64,000 bases of DNA from Bugula neritina (taxonomy: Eukaryota; Animalia; Bryozoa). The notes below the pieces were generated by a model. That model was not told the DNA's origin and made no database searches. It worked only from the letters and a program-made list of their open reading frames with translations. Each line of letters starts with the position of its first letter. Within the stretch, counting starts at the first letter, position 1. The position numbers were made by a program, and so were the translations under genes. The stretch is from assembly GCA_964035545.1 (NCBI GenBank), contig OZ037771.1:7349190-7413189 (forward strand), in the 5' to 3' direction. Positions 353 through 4,256 of the stretch are shown piece by piece.

Positions 353-3300
353 ATGAAAGTTCAGATTACTTTGTTCATACATGCTCTGCTCTTTGGGGGA
401 GCTCTATCACACTCCTGGATAGCATGCACTGACTATCTCCAGGAAAACGGTTAGTAGCTTTGTAAAATTTTTGTGTGTTTCAATGATTTTGCAAAAATAC
501 AAAATGTTTTTTTACAATTGCTATTATTGCTATCAAATGAAAAACTTGACAGCAGTGAATACAGTGGGATAAACTAAGGGTTGATATTTTTAAGGTGATT
601 ATTGGAGCTCTTCGCTGTGCAGGGCATATGCAAGACATGGACATCAATTTACACCAAAAGACAGTAAGTTCATTTATATATTGTAACTTGAATTGTTTGA
701 TTTTAGCTCTACTATAAATATTTAGAAAGCATAATATTATAGCTTGCTGTAGAGTTATATAATACTTTTATTTGTAGTCTAAACATAATTTACTTCAACA
801 AATGATAGCATATTTATCAAGCATCAATCTGTATGATATAACAATATTCTGGTCATAGTATATTATATAACTCAAACTATTGTTGAAAAATGAATTTTTT
901 ATTACCAGGTAAATAATTATGCTTTTAAATTTTATATCAAAGCTTTTCATTATGGTGACCAATCTATCATGCCGTGAAATATGCACTTTAACTATTGCAT
1001 AATGTTACACAGACTTTGGCATTGACACTGGTTATGACTACAATGGACTGTCAGAGAATAAGCCTTGTAAGACTGTGAGAGACGATAACAGTGCCTACAA
1101 CTCAGAGTATCCTATGGCAGTATATTATGCTGGACAGAAAGTGGTCATTGCTCACCCCACCAAGGTATGCTTCTAATACAGAGTAGAAATATATATATAT
1201 ATATATATATATATATATATATATATATATATATATATATATATATATATATATATATATATATATATATATATATATATATATATATATTTATATATAT
1301 ATACATATATATATATATATATATACATATATATATATATATATATATTTATATATATATATTCATTTTCTATGTAATAATATTATAGCTCAATAACATA
1401 GCAGAATGTTTTGCTGTTTCGGATGTGCTTCATTGAATTGATTTTATTTTTAGCAAAGTTTAGTAAAATATTAAGTCATTTATATATTATGAGTATTCAG
1501 GTACGCGCAAAACATAGTGCATAGAATATTGGTTCTACTTATTGCCACTCAACTACCCCTGCTGTGTTATGTTCTAGAATCACGTGGCTGAGACATGCAC
1601 TAACAAATATATACCAGACTCTGGGAGTGAAGTTTTCATTAGTCAAGTCAACCCCTCAAAAGATCCAAAACTGTCCGAGTTTAGATCCCGTTTGGTAAGC
1701 AGAATGGTGCTGTCCTAAGCTGATAAGTGCTGAGTCAAAGGGTCTATTACAGATATGGTTGCAGATGTAACCTCAGTACTCTATTTTTATTGCATTAGGC
1801 AGTTTACTTTTTAATGCTATACCTACATAAATGTGCTTTTACCCTCCTTAATTGCTTTTGTCTTGTGAAATTAATAAAAATTATAAACACTTGGTTTTAA
1901 TAACCATATATGATTACATAAAGGCTACATTCTTTAATAGCTTTATATTTTTACAATTGGAAAGAAAAAGAAATTGTAATACAAAATTATGGTTTGTTTA
2001 AAAACTTAGGACTTTTTACTAATAGATGGATTGTGGTAATACCAGTTATTTTATCGAATTTTGTGTCACTAAACTCCTTCTTCAAGTAAACCTTTGGCTC
2101 AGTGAGAACTTTCGGCCAAATTGAAGCAAGTAGCATGCATACAGCTAGTCCTCTTGAACCAAACTTAGCTGTGATTTAGTTGGAACCTAAAGAAGAAACA
2201 TTTTTAATAGCAGTAGCTTTTTACTAAATTAGAAACTGTTGACCTATTCCTTACTATAATCACTCAGTAGCCTATACATTTCTATATACTCACTCAGTAG
2301 CCTACATTTCTATATAATCATACAGGTGGCTGACCTGGGAGTGTCCCCTTTTGGTCACTCGAGAACACAGGCTGAGATAACCACCTACCCCAAACCTGGC
2401 TATCAGAACGCCCCTAAATTCTGTGAAAATATGGATAAAGCACTAGCTACAGCTGCTTTCTACCTTCCAGCAGACCTGGCTGAGGGTGAGCAAATCCTTA
2501 CATCCGGTTATCTCCATTTCCTTTTAACACAACATCACAATGTTAAGGAGGATATAAGCTAAGCGAATTACTGGGGCTAAAATCTTAGGTTAAGAAATAT
2601 AAGCTCAGGTATTAAAAATCCTTTTGAATTTCAATATAAAGCAATGTTTTGTCCAGTAATATTCCATTTAGTTTGTTCAGAATATTTTACCCTGTGTTTG
2701 AGCATTTCAAGTAGTTTTCTGAAAGATTAAAAATTAATCAAAAGTCATCAATATGTCATTTAAATATGGAATGTCAAGTTGACTTGAAAAAAGAAATGAT
2801 AACATTTGTTTGCTAGGGAGCAATGTTTACCACTGGTCTATGTAGATAAAAATAGATTATAAATTAATATAGGTTTCAAAATACTTGCATTATGTGCATG
2901 GTGTGCCAATACTTTTAAAAGCTACTTCATAGAATATATGACTTAATTAAATTAGACAATATGCCTACTTTTATCAGTCATATAAAAGAAATTTCTACAG
3001 TAGGCAGTTTGATTTTGAAAATATTGCTACAAAAATTGGTTGGCATACATTAAAAAAAATTTTTATTGTATCAAATAAAATCATTCAACTTAATTTTATT
3101 TTAGAAGATGCAGTTTTATCAGTATGCAATAAGATTTAAAACTAGCAGAAATTAAAGTTATTATCTAGTGCTCATTAGTTAGCAACTTTTGTTATATTTC
3201 AGGACGATACACATTTATGTGGGAATGGGGTTTCAACCACAACAACGATGATTACACAAGCTGCTGGGAGGCAGATGTTGTTAGCAGTAAATCTGAGAGA

Positions 3301-4256
3301 GATAGAAAGTTGTCTTCTCGGGGATTTCCTGTGAGAGAGCCAGGTGAGTATTTCATAGTCTGGATGCATAGTTAGCTTACATTGACTTGTGTTACTGCCT
3401 TGAGAACAGAAACTATTCTTATGTTGGAACCAACGCGACTTTATAGTCACTATCTCTGTACGGATCCCTGATGGAAAGGGTTGTTTAAAAGAAATTAAGA
3501 CATTTTTCTAATGTGCCACAGAGGTAATTAAGGCTAGAGGCATTTCCTAACATCACTACTCATTTTTTGATCTCGAATCACTGACCCTGTGCTAGTAGTA
3601 GGCCAGCAATTTAACCACTAGGTCACACTGCTCCTTTAAAATCTTTAAGAAAAAAAGTATCAGAATTTTGTTTCTGTTAGAAAACTTGCAAATTTACACT
3701 CGCGCATTACTAAGGTTTGCAGTAGGAATATCAGCCATTAGGAAGTCCAATAATGAATTGATGTAAGCATGGTTTTATTTTTTATGTAGCGGAACCAATT
3801 TCTATGAGAGCAAACAACTTTAAAAATATTCAAATTGAACAAATATAGAATCTTCTAATAAAGCTTTAGCGTGTTGAAGATCACCTTTAGAAAGATAACA
3901 GCCAATCATTGTTTCTTCACCTGACACTGCCACAATCATTTTTGATCAGACGGCAAATGTATTAACGTATTTTTAGATGATGCTTATGCTAGTACTTTTT
4001 TTAGCCACAGCCGAGCTTCTCGCACCCAAAATTTTGTTTTATATTTGCAGAAGTATTACATGGAAAGTCATTGGCGAAAGCTCCACCTTCAATAAGCGGT
4101 AGACCAGGAACACAAGCACCAGTGACTAGACCACCAGTGACTAGACCACCTCCCTCTCGAACAACCACGTCTTTTCCTATGCCAACTGGAGGAAACTCTG
4201 GTTCAACCATGCAATGTCTGGACACTTGCCTTAAGCAATGCTACAGCTGCAACTAA
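353..4256 (+). CDS. Secreted N-terminal-His protein, putative histidine-brace (LPMO-like) copper protein, 313 aa, 7 exons
   Basis: Exons 353-449, 595-663, 1013-1164, 1578-1694, 2326-2485, 3203-3343 and 4051-4256 join in phase with GT-AG introns (942 nt). Signal peptide [19 protein letters not shown] is followed by HSWIACTDY. Internal AHPTKNH; GRYTFMWEW...[10 protein letters not shown]; Pro/Thr linker; Cys-rich tail. AATAAA at 4419-4424. The gene model is firm; the function is inferred. Confidence 0.75.
1189..1361. repeat. (TA)n microsatellite
   Basis: About 170 bp TA run in intron 3 of gene 1. Confidence 0.95.
3440..3634 (-). mobile_element. tRNA-derived SINE copy (diverged)
   Basis: Reverse-complement similarity to the SINE at 54957-55167 (ttatagtcac...gatggaaaggg...ttcctaacatcac...actgctcc). 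Confidence 0.7.

Follow-up and report, generated by a model that had tools for sequence, protein, structure and literature searches.

A secreted Bugula neritina protein with a lytic polysaccharide monooxygenase-like fold and a predicted histidine brace: candidate member of an unclassified family

Near the start of a 64,000-nucleotide stretch of the genome of the bryozoan Bugula neritina (contig OZ037771.1, positions 7,349,190 to 7,413,189; the whole stretch is referred to here as the window) lies a gene whose product has a hydrophobic leader ending directly before a histidine, and this raises the question of whether the protein is a copper enzyme of the lytic polysaccharide monooxygenase (LPMO) type and, if so, of which family. 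From its sequence and from predicted models we consider, with a probability of about 0.65, that it belongs to an unclassified LPMO family, not named by CAZy, of secreted mono-copper monooxygenases/peroxygenases, and that catalysis by the Bugula protein itself is probable. Signal peptidase would expose the N-terminal histidine (His1, from which residues are numbered here), which together with His89 would form a histidine brace around a single copper, Tyr197 being the predicted axial residue. Once reduced, the copper would react with H2O2 or O2 and hydroxylate a beta-1,4 polysaccharide, either cellulose or chitin, at C1 or C4, and hydroxylation at either carbon would break the polysaccharide chain.

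Using AlphaFold2, the domain of a homologue from another bryozoan, Watersipora subatra, was predicted with a mean predicted local distance difference test (pLDDT) score of 95, and the B. neritina protein with pLDDT values of 93–98 per block over residues 1–230, followed by a disordered tail. When the Watersipora model was compared with 48,161 solved chains, the best 23 rows were all LPMOs or X325 proteins (Z 7.7–11.2), while the best unrelated row had a Z score of 7.5. Likewise, the B. neritina model gave 50 rows, every one an LPMO or an LPMO-fold fusolin, and Foldseek gave a result concordant with the LPMO fold, so the beta-sandwich expected in a preliminary description of this sequence is what the predicted models display. 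The best structural match was AA10 (Z 11.2; root-mean-square deviation 2.9, 144 residues aligned), with AA13 at 10.2, AA15 at 10.0, AA11 at 9.8, AA9 and X325 both at 8.8, AA16 at 7.8 and AA14 at 7.7. As structural identity to these families was 7–16% for the Watersipora model, and 6–19% for both models together, the protein is roughly equidistant from every solved LPMO family. Among predicted structures the closest neighbours were unnamed Mucoromycota clusters in the ESM Atlas (TM 0.67–0.73), which have automatic LPMO-like names only and no Pfam family, together with fungal DUF7492 proteins (TM 0.63). Foldseek against viral models gave no clear match, and an ESM Atlas search with exon 3 alone was uninformative.

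The leader is 19 amino acids long and ends in Ala-Leu-Ser, and small residues occupy positions -1 and -3 before the corresponding His in more than 100 relatives, which points to a putative cleavage site directly before His1. In an alignment of 134 relatives both His89 and Asp101 were invariant wherever present (132/132), and the aromatic position on the last strand was Tyr or Phe in 126 of 129, in keeping with the place given to Tyr197 in the preliminary description; His1 is also conserved, this being partly a selection effect, since sequences were chosen on the His1 motif and the 22 that were excluded were nearly all truncated or mis-started. For the second ligand either His84 or His89 had been proposed, and of these only the latter holds. 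Position 84 varies between His, Trp and Tyr among 132 relatives, being Trp or Tyr in most of those outside animals, and this rules out His84 as a copper ligand and indicates a structural strand aromatic. When the family profile was aligned with AfAA11B, Tyr197 fell on the axial Tyr141 and Asp195 on Glu139, residues whose roles are described for that enzyme (PMC12186267). Asp195 would thus stand in the usual Glu/Gln place of the second sphere, a position held by Asp in 18 and by Glu in three of the 29 animal rows, and because the AfAA11B E139D mutant has an initial peroxygenase rate like that of the wild type, albeit being less stable and sooner inactivated (PMC12186267), Asp here is compatible with catalysis. 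Further second-sphere candidates are the invariant Asp101, which precedes the strand next after His89, and the conserved Arg27, Gln153 and Asn191, while six conserved cysteines suggest three disulfides. In an expanded amphioxus subgroup (P0022, P0068, P0069, P0072, P0075) Phe replaces the axial Tyr with Asn at -2, a natural active-site variant.

Against PDB sequences, the family profile matched AA11 alone among LPMO families (E 2e-5 to 0.03), and there was no PDB sequence match to AA9, AA10, AA13, AA14, AA15, AA16, AA17 or X325 at E up to 10. The Pfam AA9 and LPMO_10 models reached E 0.03 at best, in 1–2 of 38 members, and Pfam BIM1-like gave no match among the members scanned. The earlier view that the sequence fits no named family is therefore upheld, with no sequence-level match to the named AA families or to X325. 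A predicted His1-exposing leader, the LPMO fold, and a second His and axial Tyr/Phe at equivalent positions are all features of LPMOs in general, but two features of AA11 are lacking, namely full-length similarity and a Tyr-Glu active-site pair, which is Tyr-Asp here. The family resembles the fungal, chitin-active AA11 enzymes in fold, His1, second His, axial Tyr and the last two strands, but differs in its 14–19% identity, an Asp or variable residue instead of Glu, a second His followed by a longer loop, a different set of disulfides and a wider host range. With AA15, the characterised animal family, it shares the fold (Z 9.9–10.0), secretion, His1 and an occurrence in animals, oomycetes and viruses, but identity is 12–14% and the N-terminal motif is different. 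The resemblance to X325/Bim1 lies in the fold, the predicted brace and a possible Asp ligand, which is invariant, whereas identity is 12%, the domain is larger, relatives have fusions to carbohydrate-binding modules (CBMs) and the Bugula protein has no glycosylphosphatidylinositol tail.

AA18 (CelOCE), which has a different fold, was set aside as a comparison. The AA18 meant here is that of Santos et al. 2025, and TrsA/Egh16 is a different proposed family. An uncharacterised putative LPMO group, 'LPMO16' (Voshol et al. 2017, 2019; A. niger An07g08250), is related to AA11/14/16 and occurs in fungi (78%), oomycetes (6%) and animals (4%) (PMC5320794, PMC6950343); compared by description only, it may equal DUF7492 including the present family, or may be an X325-like group. 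A dbCAN survey of Saprolegniales listed only AA15 and AA17 (PMC8393829). A tunicate LPMO orthogroup, ENOG5028N9R, may be AA15, and the B. neritina genome holds a separate LPMO_10-type match above cut-off (G000:C4:2371802-2372581), probably an AA15 gene.

Modules attached to relatives offer clues to the substrate. CBM1 was detected above cut-off in P0152, P0173, P0187 and the giant-virus member L013, and CBM2 in P0057. Weak matches to solved CBM2s (E 0.03–0.1) were obtained for the tails of members from amphioxus, Owenia and Lingula; these tails retain two Trp that bind cellulose in the Cellulomonas CBM2 module, and the tunicate tails are homologous to them (hhalign probability 98%). The presence of CBM1 or CBM2-like modules in many relatives therefore points to cellulose or chitin as the substrate, and as the animal tails are CBM2-like and homologous, the ancestral animal protein was probably a domain plus CBM2-like module aimed at one of these polymers, with the module apparently lost in bryozoans. 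A short Cys-rich tail is confined to bryozoan proteins, with three of its four Cys common to both Watersipora proteins. Other arrangements include a thrombospondin type-1 repeat that separates the LPMO-like domain from the CBM2-like tail in P0037, P0053 and P0054 (Lingula, Owenia), and a C-terminal PF27624 domain in P0099, P0100, P0104 and P0118 (Naegleria, Willaertia and kin).

Relatives were collected with exon 5 alone, which returned 49, and with a full-length relative and two profiles, which returned 39, 199 and 107 proteins; these searches were word-seeded and cannot establish absence from other phyla. The full-length analyses were based on the public proteins P0050, P0003 and P0234. Among animals, named members were found in bryozoans, the annelid Owenia, the brachiopod Lingula, amphioxus, with many copies, and the tunicates Styela, Ciona, Clavelina, Phallusia and Oikopleura, with several. 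The preliminary description spoke of an animal enzyme, but the family is not confined to animals: members also occur in the protists Naegleria and Willaertia, in Saprolegniales, in the stramenopile algae Phaeothamnion and Heterococcus, in the chytrid Rhizophlyctis and in giant viruses. Protist and viral relatives are close (40–50% identity), and eight viral contigs (L007–L014), four of them labelled giant-virus metagenome-assembled genomes, encode members with a leader and His1. The second His is present in these viral members as well, with an E-x-Y motif in most of them, and most group beside oomycete-like sequences; a largely viral Atlas cluster (83%, mostly Nucleocytoviricota) had a feature score of 0.90. 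Pattern scanning across 185,579 prokaryotic genomes gave no relative, and the named matches include no arthropod, mollusc or cnidarian, which in word-seeded searches does not imply true absence.

With regard to Pfam, the scan that had been suggested as a check on novelty gave a divided answer: the AA-family models had no convincing match, but the B. neritina protein (P0234) passed the cut-off of DUF7492 (PF24320), with 35.3 bits against 27, and the P0050 domain scored 37.3 bits. Most animal, oomycete and viral members score below this cut-off, and Atlas feature matches to fungal DUF7492 clusters were 0.90–0.91. The family thus sits at the edge of DUF7492, the core of which appears fungal and has no assigned function, and the fungal DUF7492 proteins are its distant relatives. 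We found no naming paper in the literature for DUF7492, PF24320 or the member accessions that were tried. Some members are automatically named 'chitin-binding type-4 domain', so annotation pipelines already sense the LPMO fold. One member, P0168 (Aphanomyces astaci), has an N-terminal small GTPase fusion, probably a gene-model error.

The gene occupies positions 353–4256 of the window on the + strand, where seven exons with six GT-AG introns give one open frame of 313 amino acids (Table 1). The preliminary description had its start right but closed it at 3343, which is the end of exon 6, with exon 7 and the stop codon reaching 4256; its seven exons and six canonical introns agree with the open frame, the splice sites, a Watersipora tblastn search and the public protein KAF6034171.1, and the codons that it assigned to His1, His84, His89 and Tyr197 are all correct. 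Two W. subatra proteins match all seven exons in the same order (tblastn), and all six intron positions and phases of the Watersipora gene are identical to those in Bugula. KAF6034171.1 (P0234), a B. neritina 'hypothetical protein' of 313 amino acids, matches exon by exon at 96% identity, and the gene is thus already called in the public annotation, as a hypothetical secreted protein. Only one of the 12 differences from it falls in the roughly 209-residue domain, with four in the leader and seven after the domain, and this excess outside (Fisher p 3e-5) indicates that the domain is under purifying selection; with four of the 12 in a leader of 19 residues, the B. neritina assemblies compared may be separate cryptic types. 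The gene is single-copy in the Bugula genome and sits on a multi-megabase host contig. An exon-by-exon Pfam scan gave a weak DUF7492 match on exon 6 as its sole result, and a PF24320 scan of the genome, run without a working control, gave no match.

An unrooted tree built from 103 domains placed every named animal row in a single clade (support 100/97) without resolving its sister group; unnamed rows in this clade had been labelled from an earlier tree and add no independent support. Two introns are common to Bugula, Watersipora, Lingula, amphioxus and Clavelina, one lying in phase 0 just before the Asn-His89 pair and the other in phase 1 within the Gly that precedes the penultimate strand, whereas the single Owenia copy examined lacks both but has an intron after the domain in common. 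The single animal clade and the two shared introns show that the gene predates the protostome–deuterostome split, and its patchy animal range reflects either many losses or members missed by the searches.

Several points weigh against assigning LPMO activity to the protein. The literature that we found contains no paper assaying any family member, and brace proteins without proven chain cleavage exist, among them X325/Bim1 (PMC10952591) and AA16 proteins reported as boosters (PMC10088020). In addition, His89 aligns weakly with the second conserved His of AfAA11A (conditional E 6e-4), the Glu/Gln position varies across the family (D, E, N, Q, A, S, P, T), and the bryozoan protein has no CBM, its domain being followed by a Pro/Thr linker and the Cys-rich tail. 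A non-catalytic copper-binding or delivery protein like X325/Bim1, in which Asp101 would close the fourth coordination site, is in line with the lack of a conserved Glu/Gln and with X325, whose fold is the same (Z 8.8) and in which an Asp completes the brace (PMC10952591). It is because Asp101 is invariant that we retain this explanation, but we judge it improbable, as CBM1 and CBM2 fusions fit a polysaccharide-acting enzyme, the domain has about 205–225 residues against 150 for X325, no X325 sequence was matched at E up to 10, and active LPMO families gave higher structural scores. More doubtful again is a copper oxidase that would mainly make H2O2, whether to feed other enzymes or as an antimicrobial, as for some AA16; AA16 proteins with an intact brace are reported to work as boosters (PMC10088020), and the second sphere is unusual, but binding modules are attached in many relatives. 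That the family is merely a divergent part of AA11 seems very improbable, since the significant match to this sole LPMO family with PDB sequence hits spans only the last two strands (37–54 residues) and structural agreement (14–19% identity, Z 9.5–9.8) is no better than with AA10, AA13 or AA15, and although both have the axial Tyr, the Bugula family has no Glu at Tyr-2 and has a 13-residue loop after the second His.

The patchy animal range and the closeness of protist and viral relatives might also be read as contamination or recent horizontal acquisition, but the chance of this is negligible and recent acquisition is refuted by the host contig, the host repeat in intron 6, the six introns common with Watersipora and the two common with Lingula, amphioxus and Clavelina, and the single animal clade. 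An ancient transfer, before the protostome–deuterostome split, is possible. The preliminary description had already argued against bacterial contamination, and the shared introns, the repeat and the animal clade bear this out; the SINE (short interspersed nuclear element) insertion that it cited is indeed a dispersed host repeat, but lies in intron 6 and so outside the range that it gave for the gene. As for the role of an LPMO of this kind, the named animal carriers, which we take all to be filter feeders, and the presence of the gene in amoebae suggest that a suspension feeder such as Bugula may use it to digest the walls of microalgae; this draws on few lineages, and we rate it at slightly under even odds. 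The same chemistry could instead remodel the organism's own chitin or cellulose, in bryozoan cuticle, tunic, appendicularian house or tube, which overlaps with the preferred explanation on mechanism and which we regard as unlikely, though not markedly so. AA15 enzymes do so in arthropods (PMC5823890), tunicates make cellulose and have several copies, and Saprolegniales have cellulose walls. On the other hand, no arthropod, mollusc or cnidarian is among the named, word-seeded matches though many of these make much chitin, and the Bugula genome has the separate LPMO_10-type gene that is probably AA15. Furthermore, amphioxus, which is not known to have cellulose, has many copies.

Table 1. Features of the gene and its predicted copper site, in window coordinates.
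Feature	Position	Strand	Remarks
TATA-like box	280..285	+	73 nt 5' of ATG; consensus match only
Exon 1	353..449	+	Signal peptide (19 residues) and start of the mature N-terminus
Exon 2	595..663	+	C22 invariant, R27 near-invariant
Exon 3	1013..1164	+	C55; strand 79-85 with H84-P85 at its end
Exon 4	1578..1694	+	H89, C94, D101
Exon 5	2326..2485	+	G151, Q153, C159; strand 166-172
Exon 6	3203..3343	+	D195, Y197, C200; two final core strands, then closing helix
Exon 7	4051..4256	+	Pro/Thr linker, short four-Cys tail, stop codon; no CBM
Candidate polyadenylation signal AATAAA	4419..4424	+	Consensus match only
SINE-like dispersed host repeat, intron 6	about 3430..3640	-	Genome repeat count, box motifs
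His1, predicted brace ligand (amine and imidazole)	410..412	+	Residue 1 of the model is matched to the first residue in solved LPMO chains
His84, no conserved ligand role	1153..1155	+	Position is His in 61, Trp in 46 and Tyr in 25 of 132
His89, predicted second brace ligand	1581..1583	+	132/132; weak alignment with second conserved His of AA11 (7P3U)
Asp101, candidate second-sphere residue or fourth copper ligand	1617..1619	+	Invariant; role putative
Tyr197, predicted axial residue	3253..3255	+	Aligns with AfAA11B Tyr141; Tyr in 111 and Phe in 15 of the family

The intron-6 repeat has 779 candidates in the genome at about 72% identity, with A- and B-box-like motifs on the - strand. Intron 3 contains a long (AT)n microsatellite (window 1189-1362), and exons of a ubiquitin-conjugating enzyme (UQ_con) gene lie downstream on the - strand (window 6032-7596).

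Taken more widely, we tentatively propose, at somewhat less than even chances, an active LPMO family whose second sphere is built on Asp and which was present before the protostome–deuterostome split, has been retained chiefly in suspension feeders, invertebrate chordates among them, for planktonic cellulose or chitin, and is used also by amoebae, water moulds and giant viruses; animals would then have, apart from AA15, a second and independent LPMO lineage. To date AA15 is the only animal LPMO family characterised, and if the assignment is true, bryozoans, brachiopods, amphioxus and tunicates would have a second and ancient one, Pfam DUF7492 would gain a function, and the natural Asp in place of Glu/Gln would bear on the distinction between brace proteins that catalyse and those that carry copper. 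The gene is present in amphioxus, in Ciona (LOC101242977) and in Oikopleura (CBY24786), so expression and knock-out tests are feasible. For filter feeders such as Bugula, it would mean an oxidative route by which to break algal walls or to shape their own cellulose or chitin.

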